A DNA stretch of 64,000 nt from Neoechinorhynchus agilis (Eukaryota > Animalia > Acanthocephala), in NCBI GenBank assembly GCA_051530055.1, contig CM121341.1:2966151-3030150 (forward strand). Direction: 5' to 3'. The notes under the pieces were generated by a model. It did not search any database and had not been told where the DNA came from. It worked only from the letters and a program-made list of their open reading frames with translations. Every line of letters begins with the position of its first letter. The stretch's first letter is position 1. Position numbers and translations under genes: made by a program. Shown piece after piece: positions 25,860 through 63,890 of the stretch.

Positions 25860-27050
25860 ATTTTAAGCCTTATTTTTGAGAATTCGGTCTTCGGCAATTT
25901 TAGATGCTGATTAATCCTTAAATTTCGAAAACATGGATGCAACGTTCCCTTGTTGCACAGCCAGGCTAATATTTTGCAGGAGGAATGTTCCTGATCTCTG
26001 ATCACCAGTGATTCTTCTCAATCTCTTAGACGATTGCTTGGCCAGATCCTGCGTCGTAGTACAGAACGACCCGAGCGTCTCGACGCCAAAGGGAACGAAT
26101 TAATGGTTCCGACTCAGGTCAATGTATTAATCTTTTTGCGGTCCTCAGCGGCGGTTGCTGCTCCTCCTCCGGTTTAATGGTGGCGAATTTTATGCTGCTG
26201 GTTGCGAATCGTGTCCCAGAGAAGGCATTTGCTTCCCCTCGCCACGGGAATACTGTAACACCGTCCGGGCTACGGTGGCCATCGAGTCGGCAAAAATTGC
26301 TCAGACCGCATTCACAGTATTCAGGGCACGGCTAAGAATAGCGTTCACTTCGGCTTATTGTGAGCACCTTTCGCCTGATTGCCGACAGACGAGACCATGG
26401 CGTTCCGATGGTTCCACGGTCACTCCGTAAGGGCAGCGATGGAATGGGCACATCGGTACTCCGAGTCTCAGGGACACTGCAATCCTTACTGTCTCGTCGC
26501 ATGGTGAAGGGCACAAACAGAAAGCGATTGGGATAGCATTGAGCCAAGCATCCGATTCTATTGCAAAGACTGCCGCCAATCGAATTTGGTTCACCAGGCC
26601 ACGAGAATCTGAAATTAAAGAGTTGTGAATTCTCGCTACGAGGGGTGAGTTCCAAACTGATTCTTTGCAACCATTGACGGGTACCTGCTCACTGCCTGAA
26701 TCTCCACACCAAAGATTAAACGCCACTACGAAATCTTCATCTAAAGTGTAATTCTCGCCAAGAAAGGATTTAACTACTTTGCGGCTTGCTTCATACGATC
26801 CCAAATAAGCTGCCAGAGAAATATCGGCTGATTTTCGGATACCCAAACCGCCGGACAACACATTCAAGGACGGTTGACGCCAGGCCTCGTCCGACAGCTG
26901 AAATTTTAAAATTCTCTCGAGAGAGGCTTTCACCGTCTCGTCCATCCTTATGTCTAAAAAAGGTGCTGTGCGCAGCTTATACAGCAGTTTTGGAATGACG
27001 AGGATGTTCTTGATCAGGAACAGAGCGCACCAAAAGTTACGGTTGAAGAT
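25860..27050 (-). mobile_element. CRE-like element remnant (RT thumb to REL)
   Basis: ALFLIKNILVIPKLLYKLRT, GGLGIR, DAWLNAIP, RIAVSLRLG, CPFHRCPYGVTVEPSERHGLVC. Confidence 0.85.
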
Positions 27051-27310
27051 TGGCAATAGGCGACTCACGACACTCCAAAATGAACACAATGCTCTTAGCC
27101 GCGCCCTGAATACTGTGAATGTGGCCAACATCCTAGAGCCGACCAATCTTTGCTGATTCGATGGCAATGGATCGGACGGTGTCACAGTATTCCCGTGGCG
27201 AGGGGAGGGTCCGCAGCCAGCAACATGAAAATCGCCACTATTAAACCGGAGGGGCGACGCAAAAAGGCAAAATACATGCACCTTGGTCGAAATCATTATT
27301 TCGTTCCCTG
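27050..27310 (+). mobile_element. CRE-like REL fragment, opposite orientation to its neighbour
   Basis: gatcggacggtgtcacagtattcccgtgg encodes SDGVTVFPW; RKKAKY and LGRNHYFVP motifs. Confidence 0.7.
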
Positions 27311-29737: not shown

Positions 29738-31830
29738 ATGGCCAACTCGACTCAGGCAAAGATGCTGATGGATGTGTACAGCAAAGACCATCGTAATTAT
29801 TACACTGTGCTCGAAATCGACCAATCAGCAGACGTGGACGAAATTAAACGAGCCTATCGCCGTCTTGCTCTAAAGCACCATCCAGGTATTTGTTTTTTTA
29901 TATTTATAACATCATTTCTCTGATCGCAGTTTAGACAAAAATGAACCTGATAAGAAATCTGAGCTTGAGAGTCGGTTTTTAGAAATTCATATGGCATATA
30001 CTTGTCTAATGGACAAATCAACACGTGACCTATACGACTTTAAGCTGAGACAAATCGGAAAAGCTCCTCCGAGTGAGCTTGTTATTGTTATTGACGATAG
30101 TGTTGATGTGACTCCTTTTTTCAATCGAAACTGCTTTTCCGGATACGGAGATGACCCCGAAGGATTCTACAGTGTATATCGTTGTTTGTTCAGCAGGATC
30201 TACGAGCAGGATGTAGGAGAAGGTGGAAATCCAGTTGAGTTTGGTCGATCGGATTCCGACGATGAATTTGTGAGACAGTTCTACAGACATTGGATCACTT
30301 ATTCGTGTCCTCGATCGTTTGCGTGGGTTGACGAGTACGTCAAAGGGATGGACAAAGAGTCCGGGTATCGTTTATACCTACAAACGGATCGTTATTCTCG
30401 AAGAAAGATTGATGCGGCTAATAAAAAGAAACGAGATAAAGCTAGAAAAGAGCGAAATCAACTCATTCAGGTAACCTAGATTCATAGTGATCTTCCTTTT
30501 AGTTTTTTTGTAGGATTTAGTTTGCCGTGTTCAAAAGTGGGATCCTAGGTACAAACGTATGAAGGTATTCGCGGTCTTTAGAACTCGCTATTTTAAGATT
30601 TTTTCTTAGCAAATAGAGAAGGCGAATACTGGAAAGCGCCACGTTACTTCGTTTAGGAAGCCAGAAAATGAGGTTTATAAAGAACCAGAATGGGCTTGTA
30701 CGGATGATATCATCGACCGCATTGTAAGAATTTCTTTTAAATGAACATTTTTAAAAATTGCGAACGGTTTGTAGCACGAATTTTGGGATGATGTTATAGA
30801 TGATGAATACGCTATACAGTGCGAGGACGGGATTGTTTGTTCTCTCTGCAATGAAGGATTTGAATCGACTAAAATGTATGGGGGTTTTAAAGTTTAGACG
30901 GATCTTTTCTAATGTTTAGGTACCTTCCAGACTTATTATCGAACGGAAAATGGGTGTTTTATTTATTTCTTGCTTCAAATTTTCGACGCCTTGCGTCTTC
31001 GTCAGGAAGCTTTCCTTCGGTTATCTGAAAAGGAATTAGAGGAGGGCAACGCTGTCCTTGCGTCTTCGTCAGGAGGCTTTTCTTCGATTATCTGAAAAGG
31101 AATTAGAGGAGGGCAACGCTGTCCGTCAGCTCATCCCTCTTTAGAGGGGATGCTCAATAAGAGGGATGAGCTGACGGGCAGCGTTACCCTCCTCTAATTC
31201 CTTTTCAGATAACCGAAGAAAAGTTTCCTGACGAAGACGCAAGGACAGCGTTGCCCTCCTCTGATTCCTTTTCAGATAACCGAAGGAAAGCTTCCTGACG
31301 AAGACGCAAGGACAGCGTTGCCCTCCTCTGATTCCTTTTCAGATAACCGAAGGAAAGCTTCCTGACGAAGACGCAAGGACAGCGTTGCCCTCCTCTGATT
31401 CCTTTTCGGATAACCGAAGAAAAGCTTCCTGACGAAGACGCAAGGCGTCGAAAATTTGAAGCAAGAAATAAATAAAACACCCATTTTCCGTTCGATAATA
31501 AATCTGGAATAAAACATGAGGGTGTTGGAAAAAGAGGCTTTCCATAATTTTTTGTTTAGGTACCTTAAACACATCAAATCTAAGCGACACAGGCGAGCAG
31601 AAGATGCGAAGAAAAAAGAGGATCAGCGTCTTGAGGAAAGAGACGTCGACGGCAGTGATAAAATGAATTGTTCTCAAACAACAGAATCATTAACAAAGTG
31701 TTCAAAAGATACTGATGGAGAATTGGAGTCAATTGCAAGTCAAGTTGATAGTCTTATGGAATCGGAAGTGAAACAGACTTCTACAAAAACTAAAAAGAAG
31801 CGTAGACGTGCACTCAAAAACAAACAATAA
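29738..31830 (+). CDS. DNAJC21: DnaJ co-chaperone DNAJC21/Jjj1-like, multi-exon
   Basis: J domain YYTVLEI...ALKHHP|DK (intron 29886-29934 restores HPD); [13 protein letters not shown]; [17 protein letters not shown]|DLV..KWDPR; C2H2 finger [13 protein letters not shown]|[10 protein letters not shown] across intron 30876-31559. Confidence 0.9.
30925..31509. mobile_element. Foldback/MITE-like palindromic insertion with internal 67-bp subrepeats, in the last DNAJC21 intron
   Basis: Left end ttccagacttattatcgaacggaaaatggg is the reverse complement of the right end; arms contain repeats of ttcctgacgaagacgcaaggacagcgttgccctcctc...; centre near 31145. Confidence 0.85.
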
Positions 31831-37070: not shown

Positions 37071-37146
37071 GTGAGAACTCTTTGAAGTGCACCACAAAAA
37101 GGGAGTGCGGAATTTTGGACTTGTCGAAGTTGGAGATGTCTAATCT

Positions 37147-37219
37147 CGACCTCGGCAGGATTCGAACCTGCAATCTCCTGATCCGTAGTCAGGCGCGTTA
37201 TCCATTGCGCCACGAGGCC
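37147..37219 (-). tRNA. tRNA-Arg(ACG)
   Basis: GGCCTCG TGGCGCAATGGATAACGCG CCTGACT-ACG-GATCAGG AGATTGCAGGTTCGAATCCTGC CGAGGTC G folds as a full cloverleaf. Confidence 0.97.
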
Positions 37220-37364
37220 AATTGATCGCGATCGAAACTACATCACAATAACGTCTAAAATCTACTGAATAAACCGATGAAAATGCTAGTCAAATATTTT
37301 TATATCAAGTGTTAGTATCCTTACGAACCTACAATTGATAAAGACCATTCTTTTTAAACGGAGA

Positions 37365-38099
37365 CTACTCATTAGTTTTCGGTAACTGTGATAGTCCATC
37401 ACTAAAATCACCGTCTTCGTTATTAATTCCATGATCATTAGCTTGTGAATGTTTAAAGTGCTCGTACATTATAGCCACGAACATCTCGTGTTTTTCTGAA
37501 TGTGGTTGACCGTTACAAAACGGAGAAGGCCCTAAGACTTCAAATTGTCCAAAATTAAGTTCTCTCACCGACGCATCTCGATCGGGCTGCCGTTTATGAA
37601 TAGTGTATTTAAGCTCTAATTGTTCCTGTAAGAACTCCCTCTTTCCTGTTTTCTCCTTCTTGATTTTATTCGCCAGTTCTTCACACGTTCTTAATGACTC
37701 TATAGTCTTGTCGGTAGATTGAATCTCAGTAGTAAACGATAATGCCAACTCCCGAGTTGCCGACGTGAATACAACTGACCTAAAAACATTTGCTCCAACT
37801 CCAATATGAACACCGAATTCGTTAATTTTCCTCGTTAAATTCAACAGACGACAATATGATTCGTGTAACAATTCATGCCGTGGTACAGTAAAAGCATTCT
37901 CCAAATTCCAAATACTAACGCTACCCAAAGAAGAGCTATGTTTCTTTATCACTTTTTTGGCATCAAACAAAATTGGCAGCAAATCTGTACCTTCGGAATC
38001 CCTAGCCATCATCATGAGCATTTCTTTAGCGTTAGCCATCGATCGCCATGAATCCTTTGGTAGCAGATATTCTTTGTTCAAAAAGTCATTGTAACTCAT
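37365..38099 (-). CDS. Hypothetical protein, 244 aa
   Basis: Long open frame in AT-rich DNA, predicted coiled-coil middle, ctcag acceptor directly before ATG; no recognised motif. Confidence 0.6.
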   Translation of the reverse strand: MSYNDFLNKEYLLPKDSWRSMANAKEMLMMMARDSEGTDLLPILFDAKKVIKKHSSSLGSVSIWNLENAFTVPRHELLHESYCRLLNLTRKINEFGVHIGVGANVFRSVVFTSATRELALSFTTEIQSTDKTIESLRTCEELANKIKKEKTGKREFLQEQLELKYTIHKRQPDRDASVRELNFGQFEVLGPSPFCNGQPHSEKHEMFVAIMYEHFKHSQANDHGINNEDGDFSDGLSQLPKTNE

Positions 38100-38761
38100 C
38101 TGAGTTTAGTGCTCAACAATAATCTGGTCCGTCGGGTTTGTTGTCATGACGATGGCGGTACTCCTCATAAACTTCGCTCTTTGATCTTGATTTTATTTAG
38201 CGTTTGAACAACTCTTCAATTTTAATAATAAACTAAAAGACTTGAATTTATGTTTATCAAAGTTATTTAATCAACGTAAATAAAAGATGAAGATCACTCA
38301 ACGAATAAAAACTCGGTCATGGCTTCTAAACAGTCACATGCAAAGTTCAAGAGTTTTTATAAAAACTCGAAAAGAAATAATAAAATTAACGGTGGATCAA
38401 AAGAGTTAAATTTATGACTACAAAGATAATAATTAGAGTTGTTTAACAGACAAGTCAAAGATTCTTGCCTTAACTACTAAAATAGAAAATCACTTACTTG
38501 AAAATAAAAATAAGAAGAGAAAAGCGATTTTACATTGATTTAATAATTTGAGTTAAGTACAAATGAATAAATTTTGAAGTTTCAAAAAAATTCACTCTTT
38601 TAAAAACACGATACCTTTCGAAAAAAATCTGTTATAAACGTGAATTTGCGAATAAAATCATGAAAAAGTGTTTTTCGCAAAAAGCAAATTGTAATCAAAC
38701 GGTCCACTGTTCTTAATTATAATCTATTCTTAAAAGATACACGAACTATTTACTTGCAATT

Positions 38762-39316
38762 TTATTGAGGAAGTAACTTGCAATCTCCTTTCTCAGTACA
38801 GCCTTCGCTAATCTTCTCTCTATTTGGTTTCCTCATCTGAGTCTTTTGCAACCACTCACGACGATTCTTTTCCCTTGCAGCCATTTCATCTTCCTTCTTC
38901 TTAGCATATTTCTCACAAACGTGCAAAGCATTCAATTTATGTTCGACATGTCGGATAACAGCATTATCAACATCCTCAATTTGTCGCTCAGTTTGACAAA
39001 TCCGCGGTTTCTCAGCGCTGACTTGATTCCTCATCCTTTCAAAAGACGCTTCTCTCAATTGGCGATGAGCATCATCACTTGAACAAACTTGAATTGCCTC
39101 TGATGACGAGTCATTGAAATCTTGCTCACAAAAATGCTCAAATGGGTTATTAGCGTACAGGGTTTTACACGTGCACGTCCGGCAAGCGGCTCCGGCTTTA
39201 GTAATGCCGTCAAAACACATTGAACAAACCGAATGACCGCATCGAGGCAAACGGCGTAGCTCTTGGCCAATGAGTGAACATTGAGCGCATCGCGGAGATC
39301 TACCGGAAGGTGGCAT
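38762..39316 (-). CDS. C3HC4 RING-finger protein with coiled-coil tail, 184 aa
   Basis: C-x2-C-x12-C-x-H-x2-C-x2-C-x10-C-x2-C: CAQC SLIGQELRRLPR CGH SV CSMC FDGITKAGAA CRTC. Confidence 0.85.
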   Translation of the reverse strand: MPPSGRSPRCAQCSLIGQELRRLPRCGHSVCSMCFDGITKAGAACRTCTCKTLYANNPFEHFCEQDFNDSSSEAIQVCSSDDAHRQLREASFERMRNQVSAEKPRICQTERQIEDVDNAVIRHVEHKLNALHVCEKYAKKKEDEMAAREKNRREWLQKTQMRKPNREKISEGCTEKGDCKLLPQ

Positions 39317-42300
39317 CTTCGAATCAGTGAGAATTGGAGAAGAATAAAGGATACTTTTGGGAAATAAAATAAATTCAACAAGAATTTAAGATGAAAATTA
39401 AACGCATTGTGGAGATCTACCGGAAGGTGGCATCTTCGAATCAGTGAGAATTGGAGAAGAATAAAGGATACTTTTGGGAAATAAAATAAATTCAACGAGA
39501 ATTTAAGATGAAAATTAAACGCATTGCGGAGATCTACCGGAAGGTGGCATCTTCGAATCAGTGAGAATTGGAGAAGAATAAAGGATACTTTTGGGAAATA
39601 AAATAAATTCAACGAGAATTTAAGATGAAAATTAAACGCATTGTGGAGATCTACCGGAAGGTGGCATCTTCGAATCAGTGAGAATTGGAGAAGAATAAAG
39701 GATACTTTTGGGAAATAAAATAAATTCAACAAGAATTTAAGATGAAAATTAAACGCATTGTGGAGATCTACCGGAAGGTGGCATCTTCGAATCAGTGAGA
39801 ATTGGAGAAGAATAAAGGATACTGGGAAATAAAATAAATTCAACGAGAATTTAAGATGAAAATTAAACGCATCGCGGAGATCTACCGGAAGGTGGCATCT
39901 TCGAATCAATGAGAATTGGAGAAGAATAAAGGATACTTTTGGGAAATAAAATAAATTCAACGAGAATTTAAGATGAAAATTCAGGGCATTGTGGAGATCT
40001 ACCGGAAGGTGGCATCTTCGAATCAGTGAGAATTGGAGAAGAATAAAGGATACTTTTGGGAAATAAAATAAATTCAACAAGAATTTAAGATGAAAATTAA
40101 ACGCATTGTGGAGATCTACCGGAAGGTGGCATCTTCGAATCAGTGAGAATGGGAGAAGAATAAAGGATACTTTTGGGAAATAAAATAAATTCAACGAGAA
40201 TTTAAGATGAAAATTAAACGCATCGCGGAGATCTACCGGAAGGTGGCATCTTCGAATCAATGAGAATTGGAGAAGAATAAAGGATACTTTTGGGAAATAA
40301 AATAAATTCAACGAGAATTTAAGATGAAAATTCAGGGCATTGTGGAGATCTACCGGAAGGTGGCATCTTCGAATCAGTGAGAATTGGAGAAGAATAAAGG
40401 ATACTTTTGGGAAATAAAATAAATTCAACGAGAATTTAAGATGAAAATTAAACGCATCGTGGAGATCTACCGGAAGGTGGCATCTTCGAATCAGTGAATG
40501 GGAGAAGAATAAAGGATACTTTTGGGAAATAAAATAAATTCAACGAGAATTTAAGATGAAAATTAAACGCATTGTGGAGATCTACCGGAAGGTGGCATCT
40601 TCGAATCAGTGAGAATTGGAGAATAAAGGATACTTTTGGGAAATAAATAAATTCAACGAGAATTTAAGATGAAAATTAAGCGCATCGCGGAGATCTACCG
40701 GAAGGTGGCATCTTCGAATCAATGAGAATTGGAGAAGAATAAAGGATACTTTTGGGAAATAAAATAAATTCAACGAGAATTTAAGATGAAAATTAAGCGC
40801 ATCGCGGAGATCTACCGGAAGGTGGCATCTTCGAATCAGTGAGAATTGGAGAAGAATAAAGGATACTTTTGGGAAATAAAATAAATTCAACAAGAATTTA
40901 AGATGAAAATTAAACGCATTGTGGAGATCTACCGGAAGGTGGCATCTTCGAATCAGTGAGAATTGGAGAAGAATAAAGGATACTTTTGGGAAATAAAATA
41001 AATTCAACGAGAATTTAAGATGAAAATTAAACGCATCGCGGAGATCTACCGGAAGGTGGCATCTTCGAATCAATGAGAATTGGAGAAGAATAAAGGATAC
41101 TTTTGGGAAATAAAATAAATTCAACGAGAATTTAAGATGAAAATTAAGCGCATTGTGGAGATCTACCGGAAGGTGGCATCTTCGAATCAGTGAGAATTGG
41201 AGAAGAATAAAGGATACTTTTGGGAAATAAAATAAATTCAACGAGAATTTAAGATGAAAATTAAACGCATCGCGGAGATCTACCGGAAGGTGGCATCTTC
41301 GAATCAGTGAGAATTGGAGAAGAATAAAGGATACTTTTGGGAAATAAAATAAATTCAACGAGAATTTAAGATGAAAATTAAACGCATCGCGGAGATCTAC
41401 CGGAAGGTGGCATCTTCGAATCAGTGAGAATTGGAGAAGAATAAAGGATACTTTTGGGAAATAAAATAAATTCAACGAGAATTTAAGATGAAAATTAAAC
41501 GCATCGCGGAGATCTACCGGAAGGTGGCATCTTCGAATCAGTGAGAATTGGAGAAGAATAAAGGATACTTTTGGGAAATAAAATAAATTCAACGAGAATT
41601 TAAGATGAAAATTAAACGCATCGCGGAGATCTACCGGAAGGTGGCATCTTCGAATCAGTGAGAATTGGAGAAGAATAAAGGATACTTTTGGGAAATAAAA
41701 TAAATTCAACGAGAATTTAAGATGAAAATTAAACGCATCGCGGAGATCTACCGGAAGGTGGCATCTTCGAATCAGTGAGAATTGGAGAAGAATAAAGGAT
41801 ACTTTTGGGAAATAAAATAAATTCAACGAGAATTTAAGATGAAAATTAAACGCATCGCGGAGATCTACCGGAAGGTGGCATCTTCGAATCAGTGAGAATT
41901 GGAGAAGAATAAAGGATACTTTTGGGAAATAAATAAATTACGAGAATTTAAGATGAAAATTAAACGCATCGCGGAGATCTACCGGAAGGTGGCATCTTCG
42001 AATCAGTGAGAATTGGAGAATAAAGGATACTTTTGGGAAATAAAATAAATTCAACGAGAATTTAAGATGAAAATTAAGCGCATCGCGGAGATCTACCGGA
42101 AGGTGGCATCTTCGAATCAGTGAGAATTGGAGAAGAATAAAGGATACTTTTGGGAAATAAAATAAATTCAACGAGAATTTAAGATGAAAATTAAGCGCAT
42201 CGCGGAGATCTACCGGAAGGTGGCATCTTCGAATCAATGAGAATTGGAGAAGAATAAAGGATACTTTTGGGAAATAAAATAAATTCAACGAGAATTTAAG

Positions 42301-42386
42301 ATGAAAATTAAGCACTCGGAGATCTACCGGAAGGTGGCATCTTCGAATCAATGAGAATTGGAGAAGAATAAAGGATACTTTTGGGA
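39284..42386. repeat. 117-bp tandem satellite, ~26 copies, containing the RING gene start codon
   Basis: gatctaccggaagg at 39297, 39414, 39531; minus strand of each unit reads ATG CCA CCT TCC GGT AGA TCT CC(G/A) C(G/A)A TGC G(T/C)T TAA. Confidence 0.97.
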
Positions 42387-43654
42387 GATTCCAAACTGAA
42401 AACATCACCCCGGACGTTTCCCTTATGATATCCGAGGACCGGAATTTTCGAGATTGTTATCCCTTTGGTGCAATCTTTCGGCATTTGTGACGCTTCTCGC
42501 GGTTAAAATTCGACCGTTTCTGGTGGTTTTACCTTTTTGCCTCGATTTGTATAAATCTTTACTGGTTGCATTTCGATACTTAAATTGAATCGCTTGATTA
42601 TTTTGTGTCGATCTCTGTACGATATTTCCTTGAGTTTTCTGATTTTACGATCCTTACATTCAACTTTCCCCACCTTTTCATTTGGCAGGGGAAAAATGAG
42701 AACCGACGTATCTCCACCAAAACACAAGTGGCCCAGGAGCGCATGTGATTGCCCTCGGTGGGTTTTTCTGTTTTGGATGTTGAACGGAGTGTGCCTGTGC
42801 GCGTAGGATCCTCTGAACTCCTTTCTCGCGAGAAAAAGAGTGGAGATTCACTTAGATGAACACTCTGACTTTCTTGAAGGTGTTTTTTTAGATTCTGAAG
42901 AAGATCCAAGATAGGGGATCGAAATATTGAATTTAATAAATAATCATGAGTTTGAGAGTGACATGAGTGATTTGTCTGATTGGCGGTGTAGAACTTGCAC
43001 CTGTCCTGCTCCGTCCACCCAAGCGAGTTTTCGTTCTGGGTGCGGGAATGCAGCAGGTTCAATCCACAATGTCGAAATCGTGAGTGTCCGTGATAGTTTG
43101 ACCTCTTCCATATCTACCAAGGCGGCTGAGTTTTTTTAGATACCCCCGGCGAGCCGAACCATCTTAAGACACAAGTCACGTCGTTGACTCAAATCAAATA
43201 TCTTCAATGGGCCACGACGTTGTCGCTATTCGTTTTTTACCAACGGTGCTGAGGTTGTTTTCGAGGCATCCACAAATGGCGCTCTCCCGTATGACGTCTA
43301 CTTGCGGAGAGAATAAGGATAAGTAGCGGCATTCTGACGTGGTCAATCAATGTTACACATCGTGTTGACCGTCGTTCGTTTGTGTGCGATCTGGGCGAAT
43401 ATTAAAAAACGTTAACTATCTCGAGGAATGTCACAAGTATCTTTTGTGAATTCGGTGGCCCTGTGCCACCCACCTCTAACGCCTGAACGTTAGATGATAT
43501 TTTTTGGCGACCGGGATGTAAGCATTTTAACCTTATTTCTGGTCGCATTCAATCGACTCAAGTTTTCATTGGATACCAGTGCGACCCCAGAAATGTGTTC
43601 TTTTCACCGAGTTGTCAGTTATCAAGTTCTGGATATCAACGCTGATGAATAAAG

Positions 43655-45470
43655 ACCCAACCTCACAAACTCTCCTCGACGCGAATAACCAAACCACTTT
43701 CCCACCCGCCCGGACCCGTAATCAACTCCAAAATAAATAGCCACATTCATTTAATTTATCAGTACTCGCACCTCCCTTGGCCCCCCCACTCCTTTTTCCT
43801 TATTGTCCAATCTTCTTGGATATTTTAACTCGAAATGAACCCGAGGAAGGGCCCAACCTCACAAACTCTGCTCGACGCGAATACCCAAACCACTTTCCCA
43901 CTCTCCCGGGCATGTAATCAACTCCAAAATAAATAGCCACATTCATTTAATTTATCAGTACTCGCACCTCCCTTGGCCCCCACTCCTTTTTCCTTATTGT
44001 CCAATCTTCTTGGATATTTTAACTCGAAATGAACAGAGGAAAGACCCAACCTCACAAACTCTCCTCGACGCGAATAACCAAACCACTTTCCCACCCGCCC
44101 GGACCCGTAATCAACTCCAAAATAAATAGCCACATTCATTTAATTTATCAGTACTCGCACCTCCCTTGGCCCCCACTCCTTTTTCCTTATTGTCCAATCT
44201 TCTTGGATATTTTAACTCGAAATGAACCCAAGGAAAGACCCAACCTCACAAACTCTCCTCGACGCGAATAACCAAACCACTATCCCACTCTCCCGGGCAT
44301 GTAATCAACTCCAAAATAAATAGCCACATTCATTTAATTTATCAGTACTCGCACCTCCCTCGACCTCCGCTGATTTTTCCTTATTGTCCAATCTTCTTGG
44401 ATATCTTAAATCGAAATGAACAGAAGGAAGGAACCAATCTCACAAACTCTCCTCGACGCGAATAACAAACAACTTTCCCACCCTCCCGGGCATGTAATCA
44501 ACTCCAAAATAAATAGCCACATTCATTTAATTTATCAGTACTCGCACCTCCCTCGACCTCCGCTGATTTCTCCTTACTACCCAATCTTTTGTCGGATATC
44601 TTAACTCGAAATTAACAGAAGGAAGGAACCAATCTCACAAACTCTCCTCGACGCGAATAACAAACAACTTTCCCACCCGCCCGGGCCCGTAATCAACTCC
44701 GAAATAAATAGTCACATTCATTTAACTTATCAGTACTCTCACCTCCTTCGACCTCCGCTGATTTTTCCTTACTACCCAATCTTTTGTCGGATATCTTAAC
44801 TCGAAATGAACAGAAGGAAAGAACCAATCTCACAAACTCTCCTCGACGCGAATACCCAAACCACTTTCCCACTCTCCCGGACCCGTAATCAACTCCAAAA
44901 TAAATAGCCACATTCATTTAATTTATCAGTACTCGCACCTCCCTTGGCCCCCACTCCTTTTTCCTTATTGTCCAATCTTCTTGGATATTTTAATTCGAAA
45001 TGAACAGAGGAAAGACCCAACTTTACAAACTCTCCTCGACGCGAATAATGAAACCAATTTCCTACCCGACTGAACCCGTAATCAATTGTAAAATATATAG
45101 CCACATTCATTTAACTTATCAGTACTCGCACCTCCCTCGACCTCCGCTGATTTTTCCTTATTGTCCAATCTACTTGGATATCTTAACTCGAAATGAACAG
45201 AGGAAAGACCCAACTTTACAAACTCTCCTCGACCCGAATAACAAACCACTTTCCCACCCGCCCGGACCCGTAATCTTCTCCGAAATAAATAGCCACATTC
45301 ATTTAATTTATCAGTACTCGCACCTCCCTCGACCTCCGCTGATTTCTCCTTACTACCCAATCTTTTGTCGGATATCTTAACTCGAAATGAACAGAAGGAA
45401 AGAACCAATCTCACAAACTCTCCTCGACGCGAATAACCAAACCACTCTCCCACTCTCCCGGACCCGTAAT
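43655..45470. repeat. ~194-bp tandem satellite, ~9 copies, C-rich on + strand
   Basis: gccacattcatttaa at 43740, 43936, 44129, 44323, 44516, 44907 (one variant at 44711). Confidence 0.95.
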
Positions 45471-45787
45471 CTACCCCGAAATGCCGACTAATTTGTTCGT
45501 CATACTCCGCAACTTTGGTAGCACCAGAGTGTTGTTCGATTTGTTGCCTTCTATCGTCGGATTTCCCCGGATGTGAATGGTCAGCGACTGAAGAGGCAAG
45601 GAAAACCTTGTGAAATATTTCGTAATTAGTAAATGAGTATCAATAACACCGGGGACAGGATTCGCCAACGTACAATCTTCAAGAAATTCGATTATTTAGA
45701 TATTACCGAACCCGTCAATAGAAAACCATAACGACGTTTAAATTGGAATTATTGTTTTGGTCTACACCCGGTATATGATTATTTATT

Positions 45788-45825
45788 AAAGACGTTTCGA
45801 ACCTCGTCGAGTTCATCATCAGTTT
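45788..45825 (-). ncRNA. Minimal type I hammerhead ribozyme (Penelope type)
   Basis: Minus strand aaa CTGATGA t gaact cgacga ggttc GAAA cg TC ttt: core, stem II, palindromic ACGU stem III, 3-bp stem I. Confidence 0.8.
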
Positions 45826-45844
45826 GTTTGTTAGTAATAGACGC

Positions 45845-45882
45845 AAACTGATGATGAATCCGAAGAGGTTCGAAACGTCTTT
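45845..45882 (+). ncRNA. Minimal type I hammerhead ribozyme (Penelope type)
   Basis: aaa CTGATGA t gaatc cgaaga ggttc GAAA cg TC ttt. Confidence 0.8.
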
Positions 45883-46219
45883 AATCGAAATAATTATTTA
45901 CCGGGTGTACACCAAAACAATAATTAGAATCACGTTCCCCGATAGCTCACATATCAACATTTAAATTATTTTGAGAATTTCAACAAGGGCGCCTACAATC
46001 ACAAAAGTCGACCCATCAACCTGAAACTGTAAACAATGCGACACATTTCATTTTTTCAATTGGAATTGAACTCCCCTAAATCTTATACTCGATTTTGTAA
46101 GATAGTTCTTAATTTTCGAAAGGACAGATGCAGTCCGACCAGGTCCTGTGCCGCGGTACCAAACGACCCGAGGTTTTAAATATTTAATTTGGGTTTTTGC
46201 GTTTGCCTATTTGTGTATT

Positions 46220-47733: not shown

Positions 47734-48408
47734 TGTTAAAAGATTTTCGACAAGCGAGTTTAAGGGTGCGTTTTAATACTCACGATTTTATGTCATAAAT
47801 AGTCTTTGTATTCAAAAAAAACACCTTCAAGGTAATCCATGTTTTTTTTCAAAAACAGAGAAATAAAAAGTGTTTTACCTTTGAGCAATATAAAATCTTA
47901 CAAAAAATACGAATCTAATTCTGATGAACGTATCACAAGAAATAGGATTGAGCGAATATTCACAATTTTCTAACATTTTTGTATTCAAACCAACTTACAA
48001 ATAAACGTTTAATTGAAACATCCGTCGAATTGGTTCCTCTTACAATAATTTTTTATCTAACCGATAAAATATTTCGTCATTCATTAATAAATAAAAACTG
48101 AAAACCCTAATCACTTTCAAAATAACGAGCAATGACTGCGGAATTCACCACTGTTTTTGGTCATTTTTGGGTTTCGAAAAACAGGCGAATTATTATGCTT
48201 TAACAAAGCTTAATTTACATCGTATTTTTATTTTATTAATTTATCGTAACTTTTTTAATCTTCGCTGACATAAAGAATTTTTAATTGCCTTTAATTTTTG
48301 GCCAGACTGTTCGTCAAATTCCATTAACAACGATTAAAATTTGTGTTTGGAATTAAGTTGTAAATCATATCTTTTATTACCTGAAGTGGATGTATAATCT
48401 TAGAAGCG

Positions 48409-48879
48409 TTGAAAGTCAATGAATCTTTTGTTTGTTTAGATGCTGTCGAATTGTTTACAACAGCAACAAAAGCGCCAATTACATTTGAGACTGCAACAAC
48501 TGAAAGATCAACGTCGTCGACTACAGAATCAACGATAGCTTCAACCCGTCTAACAGATGATTCAATAATGTCTAAAAACATTGCATCCCGAAAAGCGGTG
48601 CCAAGAAGCACCAATTGGAAATTGATTATTGGTGCAATTGTATTGTCGGTTTTGATTATCATTAGTTTTATGGTGTGCATCGTAACTCGCTTGAGACATA
48701 GCCAAGCAACGAAAAATAAAATGAAAATTGTCTCGAACGGATTTTATTTGAAACTACCTTCCTGCAAGAAAGTATTACGGCTTCGCATTAGCTATTTATT
48801 TGGTCTTATTGAGTTTCCCATCGCCCCAAAACAGTATAAACTATTTATATTCTCGTTTACTGAAACTACGCTCAGTTGA
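48409..48879 (+). CDS. Putative single-pass membrane protein (Thr/Ser-rich stalk plus TM); exon structure uncertain
   Basis: TTATTERSTSSTTEST followed by LIIGAIVLSVLIIISFMVCIV and basic residues; tttag acceptor near 48440. Confidence 0.55.
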   Translation: MKVNESFVCLDAVELFTTATKAPITFETATTERSTSSTTESTIASTRLTDDSIMSKNIASRKAVPRSTNWKLIIGAIVLSVLIIISFMVCIVTRLRHSQATKNKMKIVSNGFYLKLPSCKKVLRLRISYLFGLIEFPIAPKQYKLFIFSFTETTLS

Positions 48880-49724
48880 TGATTTAGTAGAAATATCATT
48901 GGCGCATGAAGCATGAAATACTTTACGGCCGCCAATGAGATCACAGCACCGTTACAAGCAACGATTGTTCCTTCCGTTGAGCCTTAATCTCTCATTTTTA
49001 AATCAAGGATAGTACATGGTACGCAAAAATAGTTCAAAAAATCGTTCCGTTATATTCAAATTTTGATACAAATACACAAAAGTTTGTCGTACAAAAAACC
49101 CGAAAAGCATTGCATTAAATCGGCTTTTGCGCTTTACAGCTAATCTCATGTAAAACAAACACCTGTATTAAATTTAAAGGAAATTTACTATTCCGCTAAA
49201 AAATGTATTATAGAATACAGTTTCAATCGAAAAATATTTGCATGTTGTTCAAAAAACAAACAATATTTTTATCGAACGTGCGGCTGGAGAATCAAGTAGT
49301 ATTTCACAAGGATAATATCCTAAGCAAATAATATTTTGTATTTCAGAACGTTGTGAGCTGGAAAGCAAGCTGTTCAAGAAGGTAGTATTTTAAGTCCTTA
49401 AACGAACATAACCGGCCTTCAAAAGTTCTAATTTTCTATGTTCTTTTACGCCCGTTAATTTACAATATTATTAGTTTTTTGTTTTGCAAAACATTTGCTG
49501 GTTAGAAAGTCATGACTAAAGGGGAAAACATTATGGAAACCACATCCAAGAACCTCCCATAGGACTGTATGAGCGATGTGTACAAAATAAGCTCATTCGT
49601 CAAATCATTGTTTCTAAGCTGTGCTCTGAAAAATCCCGGATCATTCGTCTTAGTTAAGATTGAACGCGATACTTTTATAAAATTTCTAAATTCTCTTCAT
49701 TAATCCGAACATTTAGTTTCACCA

Positions 49725-52328
49725 ATGGATCCCGCAGTATATGACATTCTTCGATGCCTCCTTGACCGAGTGGAAAACCTGCTACAAAATCCAGGCTCCA
49801 GAGTCGATCCTTCAAACATTCACATACCGGCGAGTACTCATATCACAAGCAGCTTGGAGCAACAAATGGGACCGAGAGATTCAAGTGATAGTCGACTCAA
49901 TCCACCAGCAAATCAAAATGAATTGGCCGACCTTCTTGGCCTGCGCAATGATTCACCGAGAATTACAAACCAGTTTCCTGCGAGTGTTCTGGCTCCACAA
50001 GTAAACCTGATGAACGAACTTATGGCCAGCATGAGATCAGTCGCTCCAATAATCGCTGCTTCCCTTCCAGTGTTATTTGATTTTGTTAATCGATCTTCAG
50101 ACACTGCTCAAAACAATGATCAAACAGCAGCTTCTACGGCGACGCGAAACGCTCAAGGATTAATTGGACGAAATGTGCCCAGAACTGAACAACCATCAAG
50201 AATCATTGAACAATGCTGTCTTCCCAAACAGCTTGACAACATGATTCGACGGGAGGCTACAAATTGCAATAACGCCGGGATACTTGGAGTTGAAATTGTC
50301 AATGAATTTTTAGATTTAGAACACGGCTTAGAAAACATTCATTCGCGTTTGCTTAAAAGCAAAACAGGAAAACCTTGTCTTCTTTGTGGCACCAATGATA
50401 GTGTTTCCTGGTGTTACAAAAGAGAAAAATTCTTGTGTAACAAATGTGCAAATGCCCCTTTCAGAGCAGCCGAAGATTCAAATAAAAAAGATGGTGGTAA
50501 TCGCGATCCAAAAGCAAAAACTCAAAAAATATCGGCTCGTCGGAGTTCTTCAAAGTTTCGACAGTCAACAAATGAGCGAATTAGCTGTCAAAGATGCTAT
50601 AGAATGAGATGCTCTTCCTGGTATCGCTGCTATAATCTTCTTTTGTGCAAGAATTGTGCACCTCAAATGGCCAGGAAGGTTTTTATAAGGTCTCGTGATA
50701 GACAAACCCAGGACTTTAATCAACATCAACGTTCATCGGCAGTTCAACCCAATCGAAACAGTTCCACTGATCGCGAACAGCAACAGAATTCTCACGATGA
50801 CAGAATCTGTGTTATATGTAAGATAAACCAAAGTTCGAGATGGCAAAAGTTCGGGGAATTGTGGATTTGCGAAAAATGCATGGATTTGTGTACATTCTCA
50901 GTTATGGCACAATTGGCAAACATTCATGCTGCAGTTGGGCAACAAACAAGCGCTTCTTTGGGAGCAGCGCAAACGAATGCTTCAAATCAAAATATTGCTC
51001 AAGCACCAACACAAGCGACGAATCCTACGTTCAGTGATGCTCCAGCATTAACTTCAAATGAAAATCCTGCACCAGAGAGTTCGCAACATCATCATTCCAC
51101 CAGCAATCGACGTTGCGATTACTGTGGAACAAATCAAAGCTCAAGCTGGTACACTTATGGACATCTGAGTATATGCCAAGAATGCATTGGATCCGTCGTT
51201 CCTTCGAATGAAAATCTTCAAGAATCGTATGATCCACATCGCCGCTGCAATGATTCGTCTTGCTCAAAATGTTCAGCGAAAGAGAGCACCGAATGGTACA
51301 GCTATGGACAATTTAAATTCTGCCAAAAGTGCATTGGTACTATCATTCCTGGATCCAAGCTTCCACCGGAAAACGCTCGTTCAACTGATGTTCAAACATT
51401 GCAAAACGAAGCAGCTCGCGAAACTCCGGCGAGAAATCCTGAAAACGAATTTGTCGGTAATGCCGAAACCCAGCAGGCGAATGATGAGTTAAGCTGCCAT
51501 CTTTGCGCTGAGAATATCACTGAAGGAACACCTTTGCATCCTGGGACTGAAATATGCGAAATTTGCTACAGTTTGCCCGCAAAGGCAATCGAGGAATCGT
51601 TGAATACTGCCCCAATTGCGGAAACATCCCCGAAACAATCTCAAGTTGAGCCGCCACATCCAGCAAATGATTCCCGTTTAAATCAATTGATCGAAATGGT
51701 GCACAGTGGATCAATTGTACCGGAACCCGGAATCGCCGAAAGCTCATCGATGTATGATTCTGATGGATTGTGTCAATGCGAGACTTGTAGGAAATTTAAA
51801 AACGAGACCAATCAAAGTGCGGCCAGCAGCATCGGTCGACAAATTGACAAATCCGAAACTGTGAATCCGCCAATCGCTGTAAAGGAAAAGGCAGTAACCA
51901 AGTCAGATAAGCAAGAACGTCGGAATCCTAACGATTCCAGGTTCAAGCACTTAAACAAGCGTCGATTTTGTTGTATATGCAAAAAAATTACAAAAACACT
52001 CCGGAATCGTCGCGGCTATTTATATTACTGCCAACGATGTTTTGAACTTGAACAAACCACGGCGTCTGGATCGATAACGAATCCTTTAGCTGGTTCATCT
52101 TTCACCGCACCAGTTTCACAATTTATAGCAGTAACGCGAGCCGAGGAAGATAACATTGAACGTTTTAGTGATCATCAATCAGCATTTAGCCTCGAAGCGC
52201 CATCAATTAAAACGGATGATTTGGAAAACCGTAAATCTACAGCAACGATTCAAACGAGTGATCGATTGGCTAGGGAATCGCAAGAACGAGATGATAATAA
52301 AACTGCAGAATCCAAAAAACCGGAATAA
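49725..52328 (+). CDS. 867-aa protein with seven C-x2-C-x16-C-x2-C (GATA-like) zinc fingers
   Basis: CLLC, CQRC, CVIC, CDYC, CSKC, CHLC and CCIC fingers all have exactly 16-residue spacers; Trp at spacer position 8 in the first five. Confidence 0.85.
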   Translation: MDPAVYDILRCLLDRVENLLQNPGSRVDPSNIHIPASTHITSSLEQQMGPRDSSDSRLNPPANQNELADLLGLRNDSPRITNQFPASVLAPQVNLMNELMASMRSVAPIIAASLPVLFDFVNRSSDTAQNNDQTAASTATRNAQGLIGRNVPRTEQPSRIIEQCCLPKQLDNMIRREATNCNNAGILGVEIVNEFLDLEHGLENIHSRLLKSKTGKPCLLCGTNDSVSWCYKREKFLCNKCANAPFRAAEDSNKKDGGNRDPKAKTQKISARRSSSKFRQSTNERISCQRCYRMRCSSWYRCYNLLLCKNCAPQMARKVFIRSRDRQTQDFNQHQRSSAVQPNRNSSTDREQQQNSHDDRICVICKINQSSRWQKFGELWICEKCMDLCTFSVMAQLANIHAAVGQQTSASLGAAQTNASNQNIAQAPTQATNPTFSDAPALTSNENPAPESSQHHHSTSNRRCDYCGTNQSSSWYTYGHLSICQECIGSVVPSNENLQESYDPHRRCNDSSCSKCSAKESTEWYSYGQFKFCQKCIGTIIPGSKLPPENARSTDVQTLQNEAARETPARNPENEFVGNAETQQANDELSCHLCAENITEGTPLHPGTEICEICYSLPAKAIEESLNTAPIAETSPKQSQVEPPHPANDSRLNQLIEMVHSGSIVPEPGIAESSSMYDSDGLCQCETCRKFKNETNQSAASSIGRQIDKSETVNPPIAVKEKAVTKSDKQERRNPNDSRFKHLNKRRFCCICKKITKTLRNRRGYLYYCQRCFELEQTTASGSITNPLAGSSFTAPVSQFIAVTRAEEDNIERFSDHQSAFSLEAPSIKTDDLENRKSTATIQTSDRLARESQERDDNKTAESKKPE

Positions 52329-52869
52329 TACAATCAACACTTCATCCCTTGATCCCCAAACAAAATGAATTGTATTGAATTTTATTGAAAAAAACATCGA
52401 TTCTCTATAATCTCATTGATATTTATTTGCGATTTACAAGATCGTTGCGCTTTTTGTTTCAAGAAGAGCGATTTTTTAGCGATGAAAAGCTCCGGTTGGG
52501 CTACAAATAATTCTGACAGCTGCTCATCTTCACAGAATTCACAAGTAGCTTTAAATGCTCAAACAATGCACTTATTCTCCAATAATATCGATTGGGCATA
52601 CTACACTGCTGAAATTAAGAAACCGGAATTATTTTTGAAATCCATTCGCACGTTATTTTTGTATAGGTCTTTGTCACTTCAATCTAGTTTTTATAATCTT
52701 ATTTAAATTCCATCTCGCATTAAAACAGGGTTTAAGGAATACGCTGAAACGATAACAAAGTTTATCCGAATTTATTAAATGAGTCATGAGTATTAAAAAA
52801 AAAGTTCGCTGACTCGGATGCTTCGAATATAAAGGAATCAAATTGGAATGCAATAACAATCAAATTTTA

Positions 52870-53935
52870 AAATGTCGATACGTTAGATACCGGATTGTAT
52901 GATTAGAATTATTGTTTAGGCATTCATCCAGTAAATAATTTTTATTAAAAACGTTTCGAACTTCGTCGGGCTCATCACCAGTTTGATTATGAACAACGCG
53001 CTCGTGGTTGATTGTTTTTTAAAAATTTTGAGCTATGAAGAAAGAGTTTGTAATCTCGTTAGTCATTCATGTCCGGTTTTTGTTCTTTGATTAAGAAGGC
53101 TTCCTCAATTAAGCGTCGAAAGTTATTATGGTCACTTGCTAAAAACATTGTCTGGTCATAATTGGCCACTGGTCAGTTTGTATTCGACGATACCACCTTC
53201 TGAGTCTTGGACCGTTTAGGCCATAAGAAACTTTGTAGACAACAGCCCTCTTTTCCACCTTCTGGTGAGTTTCCGGAAAATTAGGTTTCCTATCAGCACT
53301 GAAGGTTGAAAATAAAATTGGTGTTTTATCGGCAGACCGCTGTTCTTAATTGTCATAGAGATTCTGTTACGCCAAGAGTTGGTTTGTGGGTCCATCTCCG
53401 GGACTCCAATGCACAGGTCCATTCGATTCGGTCCTATGAATGTTTCGTTTGACTGATTGTTCGTCGTTCGGTCCACTTGCTCTTGCGCTGAAGTAAAAAC
53501 ATCTTTGGGGTACCCAAACTTGCTGAAAATTGTGGATCTCATCTCCGAGGCGCAGAAAGCCTCGCAATGTACCAACTTTTGTGCTCTTATTATGGGCACT
53601 GTTCCAAATTATACAATTATTTGTTCCAGTTACCTTTCTGTAGACGGAGGTAGTAATTTGTATTCCATTTTTTTCTGAATCAACACATCTAGAAACGGCA
53701 ACCTTCCATTTTTATCGCATCTATTCATAGTGAATTTGATTCGATAATGTTAAAGGTTGAGATGCTACATGAAATCGTTAGCACTCTGTTCATTACCGGG
53801 CCAAATCACGAATATATCATCTACATATCTTTTGTAGAAGATCGGTTTAATTGCATACGATTCCATTGCACTTTTTCCAAGCGATACATTATGGGATTAG
53901 CCAGAACTGGGGCAGTAGGTGAACCCACCAATCCA
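52870..53935 (-). mobile_element. Degenerate Penelope-like element (RT, GIY-YIG, terminal hammerhead remnant)
   Basis: GSPTAPVLAN, FYKRYVDDIFVIW, LPFLDVLI, TSVYRK, VVYKV, RLIEEAFLIK; hammerhead with CTGGTGA core at 52945-52985. Confidence 0.85.
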
Positions 53936-57849: not shown

Positions 57850-59530
57850 CATAGATTTCTAAAAGGAAATCTATGACATTGTACCATTGAAGATTGATAA
57901 AGGGTATGGATATTGCGTTACCAATCGTGAACAGTATCAATAGCCTCGTTTCAAGATATTAATGGGAATTCAGTTCAAGTGTCTTAATGTTTTGTCCTAC
58001 TCTGAAACTGGAAAAGGAATTCACTGCATTCATACTGATGAAGCAAAATAAAATTGGGAGTGCTGACTACTGGGCAGTTAGGTCCTTGAACTCTAGGACA
58101 TCCAAAATGTACCTATTGGCCAAGGTAAACAAATGTCCGATTAAATTCAAACCAATAGTTGCGGCTCATACATCATTTTGTACAAGTTTGTCTAGAAAAC
58201 TGGCTCTGATGCTTCGTCAGAGAATGGAACGGAGTACAAATGTAGTATGCTCTGGAAAGGACTTCATTGGTCGACTTAAGACGTCGTAGGACTCGCGTTC
58301 TATCATGGTATCGGCTGATGTGATTTCATTATTCACAAATATCCCAGTAGATACTGCTATTGAACTGGCTATACCTATCCTACGGGCCTGTGATAATTGG
58401 AAGCTAGGAAACTCTTGAGTTATTGCACCAAAATTTCAAACTTCCAATTTGAGGGAATGGATTTTGATCAGGTGAATGGTGTAGCGATGGGTAGCCCTCT
58501 TACATTGGTGCTCGCTGAGTTATACATTCGGCAGTGGGAAGAGAAATACCTACTCACAATTCCTGGAGTCTCATTATGGGCCCGATGTGTAGAGGACACA
58601 TTTATTCTCCTTGATCGTTCTGCCTATGCCTCCATGCACGTGCAGAACTACCTCAACACTAAAGATCCACACATTCAATGGTCGACGGATGTTGAGACTG
58701 ACGGTAAATTCAGGTTCCTGGATGTTGCAATAGGGCGTGTTGGTGGAGATGGGAATGCGACTAAGGTTTATCGGAAAATCGATATTCCACATGACATGGT
58801 ACCATGGATCTCCTCTCAACCACGAGAATATAAGATCTCCAGGCTTAGATCATTGGTACAACGAGCGTTTGCTTATTGCAGCTCTAGTACTGACCTCGAA
58901 CATGAAATAGATTTTATCTTGAATTTATCAGGACGGAATGGTTATCCGTTGAATCTGCATAGGAAGGTGATCAGGAGCGCTAGGTTTGGGAGGCCGACAG
59001 TCGTGACATCGGATAGGGATCGTGTGTTTCTTCAGTTGCCGTTTATTGACGATTCCTCCTCTCAGAGTTTATCCAGGGTTTTATTGACAAGCCACCAGAG
59101 CAAACGTACGCTCGTCTATTCCAAACGAAGAAATAATCTTCATGGTCTGATCTGTCCGAGCAATCGTGAAGGCCCAAGCGGTGCGGTATATAGAATACCT
59201 TGCTCGGATTGTAATCGCTGCTATAATGGCCAGGCAAATAATTTTGGGAGAAGGATGAGGGAACTCCGCTGTGGTTTCCCACTCTCTGACTACGGGCCAT
59301 AAGATCGATATTAACGACGCATATTTGATGGTAGTCAATAACCATGGGGTTGAGCGTGTTATTATCGAGGTCATGTACATTCAGGGAGCCAATACCTTCG
59401 AGAGAAACAAAACAGATTATTCCCTAAAGTTGGGGATACCTCCTGATAACACATTGAGGTTGCCATATTCCTTTTTTAGATAATAGACTGAGGAAGTCCA
59501 ATGTGATTAGACGAAATATTTAAATTAAAG
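57850..59530 (+). mobile_element. Degenerate Penelope-like element with downstream decayed hammerhead; 5' limit approximate
   Basis: MYLLAKVNK, KPIVAA, SADVISLFTNIP, GVAMGSPL, RCVED (YVDD mutated), FLDV, VYRIPCSDCNRCYNGQ; CTGAGGA a gtc..gac GAAA at 59488-59516. Confidence 0.88.
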
Positions 59531-59589: not shown

Positions 59590-60960
59590 TATTAAATATC
59601 GAAGACGCCGCCAAAGTCAAGGAGCTAATGGATGGGTGACTCGAGAGCAACTAAGCCTCCTGGGTAGTTGCGTCTTCGATTCAAATGTGGAAGATGAGAT
59701 CGGCCATATCATACCGAAACTTTCGTTGCTGTGCGATAGGGTGAGCGCTTTCTCGGCTCACGGAGCCTTGTTTCTCATAAAGAACGCGCTCTTCATCCCC
59801 AAATTATTGTACAAGGTTCGCACAGCAACATTTTTCAAACATAAGGAAGGATTGGCTAAGCTCGACGGCAAGGTGAGGGCTTCTCTCCAGCGTATTTTAA
59901 ATGTCTAGCTCTCAGATGAGGCGTGGCGACAAGCTTCATTGCCTGTGTCATCTGGGCGATTCGGCATTCGGACGCTAGTAGACCTTGCCTTGCCAGCCTT
60001 TCTTGGATCGTATGAGTGGAGTTAACCGATAACGAAGAAAATTCTGAGGGGAAGTTTTGTTTTGGCCGAGACTTTGTGGTGGCAGTTGAAGAATGGTGCC
60101 AGCATGCAGGCGCTAACCATGTTCCCGTGAATAGCCTCAGACAGTCTACCTATCGTCGCGAGAGCTCATAGCTCTCTACTTTCAGGTTTTCGCGATGGGG
60201 TCGTCCTAGCAAGATTGTTGGCAGTTTCGACACGAGAATCGGGGACGTGGTTGGAGGCCGTTCCTCTGGCATCTGTGGGAACTCTTCTCACTGATGAAGT
60301 AACGAGGATCGCAGTGTTCTTAAGACTTGGTCTCCCGATATGCATGCCCCATCGATGTCGATGTTGGTCTTTGGTTGAGCTTTCGGGCGACACGGCCTCG
60401 TTTGTCGAAAGTCATTAGGAAGGTTCTCACGCCATTCTGAGATCAACAGCGTAATTTCTCGGACGTTGAGAACGGCGAACTTCCCCAACATCTTGGAAGC
60501 CTCCCATCTTTGTCGACTAGACGGTCGTCAACCTGACGGAATTTCAATCTTTCCGTGGCGGGGACGTGTGTGGACACCCTCGCAGCGAGCAACATTCCCT
60601 ATTCTCTCGAAATCGGTCGAGGTGCCGCCAGTGCAGCGGAAGGGAGGAAGGTACGAAAATATAGAGAATTAGCAAGGGCTCACTATTTTGTCCCCTTTGG
60701 GGATACAGACGTTTGGAGCACTTGGCAGCTCGGAATTCACTCTGCTTCAGGATCTCGCGAAGAAATTGAAAGAAACGACCGGCGACGAACGAGCAGGTGT
60801 ATTCCTGCGACAAAATATATCGCTCGCAGTACAACGAGGCAATGCTGTCGACCTGACGGAATTTCGGTCTTTCCGTGGGGGGGGAGGGCAAGTGCCTTCT
60901 CTGGGATGCTCAGGAATCTTATCATTAACTTTGGAACTGATACTAATCCTTTGTAATAAT
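59590..60960 (+). mobile_element. CRE-like element, 3' half (RT thumb, knuckle, REL)
   Basis: GALFLIKNALFIPKLLYKVRT, WLEAVP, RIAVFLRLG, CMPHRCRC, RQPDGISIFPW, CVDTLA, QNISLAVQRGNA; frameshifted. Confidence 0.85.
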
Positions 60961-63659: not shown

Positions 63660-63731
63660 CTCGGTGTCGGGGAATCGAACCCCGGTCTCCCGCGTGACAG
63701 GCGGGGATACTCACCACTATACTAACACCGA
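63660..63731 (-). tRNA. tRNA-Asp(GTC)
   Basis: TCGGTGT TAGTATAGTGGTGAGTAT C CCCGC CT-GTC-AC GCGGG AGAC CGGGG TTCGATT CCCCG ACACCGA G. Confidence 0.97.
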
Positions 63732-63797: not shown

Positions 63798-63890
63798 CAA
63801 TCTCGCTAGCAGTACAACGGGGCAATGCTGCCAGCGTGATGGCGACGGTCGAAGAAGGAGAGAAGCTGGAATTCGGCGGGAGGTGGTGAG
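63798..63890 (+). mobile_element. CRE-like element 3' tip
   Basis: ISLAVQRGNAASVMATV...*. Confidence 0.7.

Follow-up and report, generated by a model that had tools for sequence, protein, structure and literature searches.

The human INS and MAOA genes carry tandem repeats, in the form of variable number tandem repeats (VNTRs), in their upstream 5' regions. The ribosomal DNA (rDNA) spacer promoters of Drosophila (240-bp repeats) and Xenopus are RNA polymerase I promoters for which both transcription from the copies and an enhancer function have been shown. In yeast, GCN4 is subject to translational control by four upstream open reading frames (uORFs). This article describes a tandem array with a 117-bp unit that includes the start codon and first codons of a RING-like gene and lies directly upstream of that gene, in a 64-kb stretch of DNA (hereafter the window) from the acanthocephalan Neoechinorhynchus agilis (assembly GCA_051530055.1, WGS project JBMGUZ; CM121341.1, a 19.4-Mb chromosome). 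The genome of this species comprises 46.2 Mb and has been annotated with BRAKER, and strand-specific RNA-seq of 74 individual worms exists (PRJNA1223661; PMC12690905). Many species-specific satellites have been reported in acanthocephalans (PMC11758010), and under the accepted model any sequence can seed a satellite through de novo tandem duplication (PMC5615363). The array is probably a young, locally born one of minisatellite scale that captured the start of the RING gene, most likely as a neutral by-product of a repeat-prone genome.

With newborn locus-specific arrays and minisatellites, the array shares the head-to-tail repetition of once-unique sequence, high identity, higher-order repeats, divergent edges, and unequal exchange (PMC5615363); it differs from them in that the seed spans a protein-coding start codon, so that each unit has an ATG-led mini-frame. 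Classical satellites are more abundant than this array, which occupies 3.1 kb at one locus in the approximately 140 kb examined. Like the rDNA spacer promoters, it consists of tandem duplicates of a start region directly upstream of the real start, but the RING gene is protein-coding and the units are at most putative promoters. The likeness to uORF control of the GCN4 type lies in the presence of short ATG-led frames, in a favorable start context, upstream of a main open reading frame (ORF); however, the 26 upstream units, if part of the mRNA at all, would be expected to block translation and not to tune it. To our knowledge, no regulatory design has been described that relies on 26 identical uORFs arising from the amplification of a repeat. 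As with the INS and MAOA VNTRs, the array is located near a promoter and its copy number could in principle alter expression, but in INS and MAOA the repeats include neither the start codon nor any coding sequence of the gene.

The RING gene and its mini-ORFs lie on the minus strand, and all coordinates are window positions unless another locus is named. The features that define the locus are:

39275 to 42386, minus strand: tandem array with a period of 117 nt (39 codons), 26.8 copies (Tandem Repeats Finder)
38762 to 39316, minus strand: intact RING-gene ORF of 184 codons (ORF list); the public assembly has a called gene with an identical 184-aa product
39284 to 39316, minus strand: segment B in the gene, its first 11 codons (ATG...GCT), including Cys10, the first zinc-ligand codon (unit alignment)
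39317 to 39361, minus strand: the segment A nearest the gene, 45 nt directly 5' of the real ATG (CCCAAAAGT...TTCGAAG) and present in every unit (alignment)

Tandem Repeats Finder reported one array at 39275-42386, with 96% matches, 1% indels, and a score of 5769. This 3.1-kb array directly adjoins the RING ORF, and its ATGs run from 42340 at the distal end to 39433 and then to 39316, the ATG of the gene. The ATG-led 23-mer ATGCCACCTTCCGGTAGATCTCC is found in 27 exact copies, all on the minus strand, where none would be expected (100 shuffles). These 27 starts belong to 26 upstream mini-ORFs of 10-15 codons and to the RING gene itself, which bears out the observation in a preliminary description of this DNA that about 26 copies of the RING 5' region, each a short ATG-led ORF, lie upstream of the gene. 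The products of the mini-ORFs, each followed by a stop codon, are:

MPPSGRSPRCV: 11 copies
MPPSGRSPQCV: 7 copies
MPPSGRSPRCA: 4 copies
MPPSGRSPQCA: 1 copy
MPPSGRSPQCPEFSS: 2 copies
MPPSGRSPSA: 1 copy, in the most distal unit

Each 117-nt unit is composed of segment A (45 nt of native 5' flank), segment B (33 nt, the ATG plus 10 more codons), and 39 nt that are found only in the array, TAATTTTCATCTTAAATTCTCGTTGAATTTATTTTATTT, which start with the TAA that closes most of the mini-ORFs and contain a second in-frame TAA. The earlier figure of some 85 bp upstream of the ATG holds as a length, as 84 nt of unit sequence precede each ATG, but as native promoter sequence it was overstated: only 45 nt of these are demonstrably native, and the other 39 nt are the array-only segment. 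Every ATG has an A at -3 (GAAGATGC).

The search for further copies of the unit covered the rest of the window and four other loci (L002-L005), approximately 140 kb in total of the 46-Mb genome, and returned none. With 27 copies over 3.1 kb at one locus, the array is a tandem repeat array of minisatellite scale, for which, on the sequence covered, the earlier term satellite appears too strong.

The unit length of 117 nt equals 39 codons, and a frame that lacks stop codons within the unit stays open across units (peptide NLFYFPKVSFILLQFSLIRRCHLPVDLRDAFNFHLKFSL) and accounts for listed ORFs of 457, 406, and 156 codons, which could be taken to encode a repetitive protein. The frame lacks any ATG, however, the listed starts being TTG and GTG, bacterial start codons used by the ORF tool; non-triplet indels split it into three pieces; and one open frame of six per 117-nt unit is unremarkable and was left uncalled in the public annotation. 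The long ORFs were rejected as coding on account of the missing ATG and the indels, and a repetitive protein is almost certainly not encoded here.

The breakpoints of the unit can be read at both ends of the array. An alignment of all 27 copies shows no difference between the gene copy and the array consensus from -45 through +31, and the bases of the gene copy at +32 and +33 match a variant carried by eight units, which agrees with the earlier claim that the unit contains the gene's own start. A BLAST hint of gene/unit homology from +33 to +42, that is, 9 nt at 39275-39283 (CAATGTTCA in the gene vs TAATTTTCA in the unit), had no statistical support (p 0.36), and beyond this 9-nt stretch the similarity between gene and unit is nil. 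At the distal edge, the unique sequence GGGTGATGTTTTCAGTTTGGAATCT joins position -45 directly. The unit is collinear with the 5' flank and first codons of the gene and has definable breakpoints, which argues for its derivation from the gene start. A contiguous ancestral sequence does not account for the whole unit, in that the array-only 39 nt have no counterpart in the flanks or the gene; the duplication would hence have been accompanied by a junction insertion, or the event would have been more complex still. The only match to the 39 nt is a weak one (16/21) to segment A, with an uncorrected p of 0.02, which might fit, if weakly, the insertion of templated sequence at the junction of the first duplication.

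An unamplified comparator for the distal end of the array is present at L002, a second locus on this chromosome at a distance of 700 kb. The region concerned is:

42341 to 42530, minus strand: distal boundary and ancestral upstream region, composed of the first segment A (42341-42385), a unique flank U (42386-42410), and further flank (BLAST, global alignment)

A second copy of this sequence of about 190 nt is found at L002 20046-20310, with 91% identity over 67 nt and 84% over a further 92 nt (BLAST). In the L002 copy, flank U and segment A are contiguous, single-copy, and untandemed, and the ATG-led 33 nt are absent; the similarity between L002 and the window halts within a few bases of the RING ATG. 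Judged from these alignments, L002 shows the arrangement that preceded amplification, with U followed by A as the ancestral order, and the immediate upstream region of the RING gene is itself a copy of sequence present elsewhere. Retroelement fragments crowd L002 at the place where the flank similarity stops. The flank element (42341-42530 and L002 20046-20310) is a candidate for the end of a mobile element. No further copy of it or of the unit was found in the loci that were sampled through paralogs of a Cys-rich 867-aa protein family encoded elsewhere in the window (see below).

The product of the RING gene, which starts at the ATG at 39316, opens with MPPSGRSPRCAQC and satisfies C3HC4 spacing at eight of eight zinc ligands (C10-x2-C13-x12-C26-x-H28-x2-C31-x2-C34-x11-C46-x2-C49, read from the translation; rule applied, C-x2-C-x9-39-C-x1-3-H-x2-3-C-x2-C-x4-48-C-x2-C). 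No Pfam RING family matched the 184-aa protein above its curated threshold; the sub-threshold matches had E values of 0.012-0.24, with zf-C3HC4 at 15 bits vs a cut-off of 21, zf-RING_2 at 14.6 vs 27.3, and the remaining RING models likewise sub-threshold. In a Protein Data Bank (PDB) search with residues 1-70, nearly all matches were RING fingers, the top one being rice EL5 (E 0.0027), with an alignment that begins at C10. In its own frame, the ORF has codon-usage log-odds of +0.23 per codon; the five other frames have negative values, a pattern that resembles the real genes of the window. About 0.36 open stretches of this length are expected in 64 kb, so that length alone is not improbable. 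The protein found no homolog but itself among 5.8 billion clustered proteins (word index) or among 1.84 billion representatives (full HMMER scan), and tblastn found no RING paralogs in L002 and L003. An exon-like ORF of the neighboring DnaJ/ZUO1-like gene, used as a query for syntenic loci, returned nothing. With AlphaFold2 run on the single sequence, residues 1-80 stayed below a pLDDT of 50, and residues 81-160 were predicted to form a long helix. The 3' end of the gene has a further feature:

38761 to 38766, minus strand: AATAAA hexamer that overlaps the TAA stop of the RING ORF (read from the sequence), likely the poly(A) signal of the RING gene

The protein thus shares with C3HC4 RING E3 ligases the canonical spacing at all eight ligand positions and weak matches almost only to RING fingers, and it differs from them in being sub-threshold in every Pfam RING model, homolog-less, and devoid of a confident structure model. 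This evidence supports the label RING-like for an orphan 184-aa protein, whereas the name E3 ligase used in the preliminary description was overstated, a predicted ligase role being a label drawn from Cys/His spacing and sub-threshold matches.

A direction from gene to array is favored on three grounds: the RING similarity, weak but consistent, starts at Cys10, inside the repeated part; L002 has its comparator in single copy and without the ATG-led 33 nt; and the search of approximately 140 kb found no other unit. The reverse order, in which a pre-existing repeat or the end of a mobile element gave a start and first codons to a truncated RING gene, would suit a 5' flank that is itself repeated 700 kb away with similarity that stops within a few bases of the ATG, and it would also suit an orphan protein with no relatives to reveal its ancestral N-terminus. 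It sits poorly with a flank copy at L002 that is not tandemly amplified and has no ATG-led 33 nt, with the lack of other unit copies in the approximately 140 kb, and with a Cys10 that belongs to the repeated part, keeps the exact spacing of a RING, and is matched in alignments to the first Cys of solved RING structures. We regard a repeat-first origin as distinctly unlikely.

The growth of the array has left block duplications among its units:

39668 to 40366, minus strand: two copies of a 3-unit (351-nt) higher-order repeat (unit comparison)
41180 to 41881, minus strand: six identical 117-nt units, with ATGs at 41881, 41764, 41647, 41530, 41413, and 41296 (alignment)

The two trimers agree at 347/351 positions, and the first two monomers inside the trimer differ at 7/117. 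The six identical units reflect recent local amplification, and the most divergent unit of all is the most distal one. Higher-order repeat, identical block, and divergent edge unit together point to growth by unequal exchange. A T shared with the L002 copy has been kept in the two distal and four internal units; at the gene, the majority C is present instead, an indication that this copy too takes part in homogenization. Substitutions concentrate in the CpG-rich codons 8-11, five of the ten variable sites being in CpG (p about 0.001), and indels of 1-4 nt are tolerated among units. This CpG bias is not backed by genome-wide CpG depletion, as the CpG observed/expected ratio of the window is 1.21, with no depletion; local cytosine methylation or chance clustering may underlie the CpG-site variation. 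The pattern of variation appears to hold nothing suggestive of selection on the mini-ORFs.

The same variants bear on whether the copy number, or the array itself, might have been produced by the hybrid long-read assembly of pooled worms. The assembly was built from Oxford Nanopore (ONT) reads of at least 5 kb, a few HiFi reads, and Illumina reads from pooled animals (PMC12690905), and in several units the only differences are indels of 1-4 nt within homopolymer-like runs, possibly residual read errors. Against this, a 3.1-kb array can be spanned by single ONT reads filtered to at least 5 kb (PMC12690905), and structured shared variants and a 3-unit higher-order repeat are not created by collapse or expansion errors. 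An assembly artefact is a very unlikely source of the array.

Tandem arrays are abundant in this part of the genome. The window contains 11 of them, with periods of 25-255 bp, which occupy 13.2 kb of 64 kb (21%), and a comparison sample of 67 kb elsewhere on the chromosome (L002-L004) contains 10 arrays that occupy 4.8 kb (7%). Such a density is striking for a compact 46-Mb genome. At roughly one array per 6-7 kb, some overlap with gene starts would be expected by chance, and with tandem arrays so commonplace here, no special explanation is called for when one of them overlaps the start of a gene. One further array ends 355 nt upstream of an ORF, and another has a comparable position:

2759 to 6038: 129-bp array of 24 copies with 98% identity, which stops 118 nt short of a Piwi-family ORF, upstream of its ATG
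104 to 2641, minus strand: the intronless Piwi-family ORF, 845 aa, with PAZ and Piwi domains

The layout of the Piwi locus resembles that of the RING locus, but the 129-bp array excludes the start codon.

The consequences of the array for the RING gene would depend upon where transcription starts. With a start inside the last unit, the RING gene would be expressed normally; starts farther upstream would produce leaders with up to 26 decoy frames, each with A at -3, and little RING protein. Under scanning, up to 26 decoy frames in a leader would nearly abolish translation. The preliminary description had envisaged a working regulatory device, either with a promoter in each unit or with the array as one long leader in which 26 short frames hold back translation of the RING ORF, copy number acting as dose. 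The retention in every unit of an ATG with A at -3 and of a closed short frame is in line with such a device, as are the intact and coding-like RING ORF, the position of other window arrays just upstream of genes, and the absence of a sense-strand AATAAA from the 117-nt unit as read, through which a transcript started upstream could run on to the gene. However, the 45 nt of native upstream sequence per unit leave little room for a core promoter and leader, variation among units tracks mutability (CpG sites) and not codon position, with small indels tolerated, the youth of the array means that an intact ORF says little, and 26 successive decoy frames are expected from what is known of scanning and reinitiation to abolish translation and not to tune it. 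Folding of a unit dimer as RNA was unremarkable (z = -1.9), and no Rfam family matched the array, the only Rfam matches in the window being two transfer RNAs (tRNAs). Such a device is unlikely, and neither version of it is supported by the sequence. The array might more broadly be a copy-number-variable control element of the RING gene, by way of weak promoters, decoy starts, or small RNAs, for which the probability is low; if it were one, expansion and contraction by unequal exchange would rapidly adjust or shut off, among worms, the dose of a predicted ubiquitin ligase specific to this lineage.

Small RNAs from the array could also target the 33-42 nt of coding sequence that it shares with the RING gene and so silence that gene, as happens in repeat-derived Piwi-interacting RNA (piRNA) systems. 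The tandem copies of a gene fragment would suit such a source, and the antisense (plus) strand of each unit carries three AATAAA hexamers and an 18-codon frame of its own, both circumstantial points. The shared target is very short, however, and the sequence gives no hint of bidirectional transcription, which makes silencing by this route most improbable.

The preferred explanation, a young array born from the gene start without a role of its own, would run as follows. The segment from -45 to codon 11 (+33) of a lineage-specific RING gene would have been duplicated in tandem. Some 39 nt of extra sequence would have been left at the junction, supplying the TAA that closes the upstream copies. 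The pair would then have grown to 26 upstream copies via unequal exchange or replication slippage, including the duplication of multi-unit blocks, and homogenization would continue, with the gene copy taking part. Several points weigh against this explanation. A donor for the array-only 39 nt was not found in the flanks, the gene, the rest of the window, or L002 and L003 (approximately 130 kb), and the attribution of the unit to a single locus rests on approximately 140 kb of the genome. The intact RING ORF and an ATG-led 23-mer without variation in 27 of 27 copies could reflect constraint; other long stretches of the unit are equally invariant. The anatomy of the locus, the breakpoints, the way in which the array grew, the unamplified comparator, and the density of arrays are documented by the sequence. 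That the array has no dedicated function, being one of many formed in intergenic DNA by this genome, is something we infer from context and not a result.

The remainder of the window contains the following additional features:

37365 to 38099, minus strand: 244-aa ORF, a called gene 660 nt downstream of the RING gene, with coding-like codon usage
37146 to 37220: tRNA-Arg(ACG)
47950 to 52936: 5-kb segmental duplication with 97% identity to L002 9413-14387, 700 kb apart, which does not reach the array
49725 to 52328: 867-aa Cys-rich ORF inside the 5-kb duplication, with no Pfam match
30989 to 31124 and 31179 to 31445: 67-bp repeat, two copies and then, 55 nt on, four copies inverted
45742 to 45930: nested inverted repeats with 42-43-nt arms and 88-93% complementarity, a potential hairpin of about 190 nt
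63660 to 63731: tRNA-Asp
61099 to 62988 (minus), 58397 to 59302 (plus), 26355 to 27296 (minus), and 9391 to 12806 (plus): retroelement-like ORFs

No Pfam family matches the 244-aa ORF, which is the sole member of its 90% cluster and possibly a second orphan gene. The 867-aa family has at least five members on the chromosome (P0003-P0007) and no relatives outside N. agilis. The 67-bp repeat falls within the called DnaJ/ZUO1-like gene, which extends over about 29738-31830, and the hairpin, which lies just past a 193-bp array (43651-45482), could be a small inverted-repeat element. Sequence beside tRNA-Asp (63800-63925) recurs three times in tandem in L002 (4712-5527 and 14438-15275) with 93-94% identity, and each L002 recurrence then matches window 60749-60847 (within 60107-60847), which suggests a dispersed repeat family, possibly tRNA-associated. 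One of the retroelement-like ORFs has a sub-threshold RVT_1 match (28.0 bits vs a cut-off of 29.6, E 2e-6) and two share the motif FLIKNIL.IPKLLYKLRTA; in the inspected parts of the assembly, these ORFs are not among the called genes.

The RING locus provides a clean and datable case of the birth of an array from unique sequence, with both breakpoints, a junction insertion, an unamplified comparator, and legible block duplications. As the seed carries a start codon, it is also a natural test of dozens of decoy starts on a gene. If the array is neutral, it shows how readily a compact (46 Mb), repeat-prone genome places arrays beside genes, and annotators should expect gene-derived repeats of this kind.

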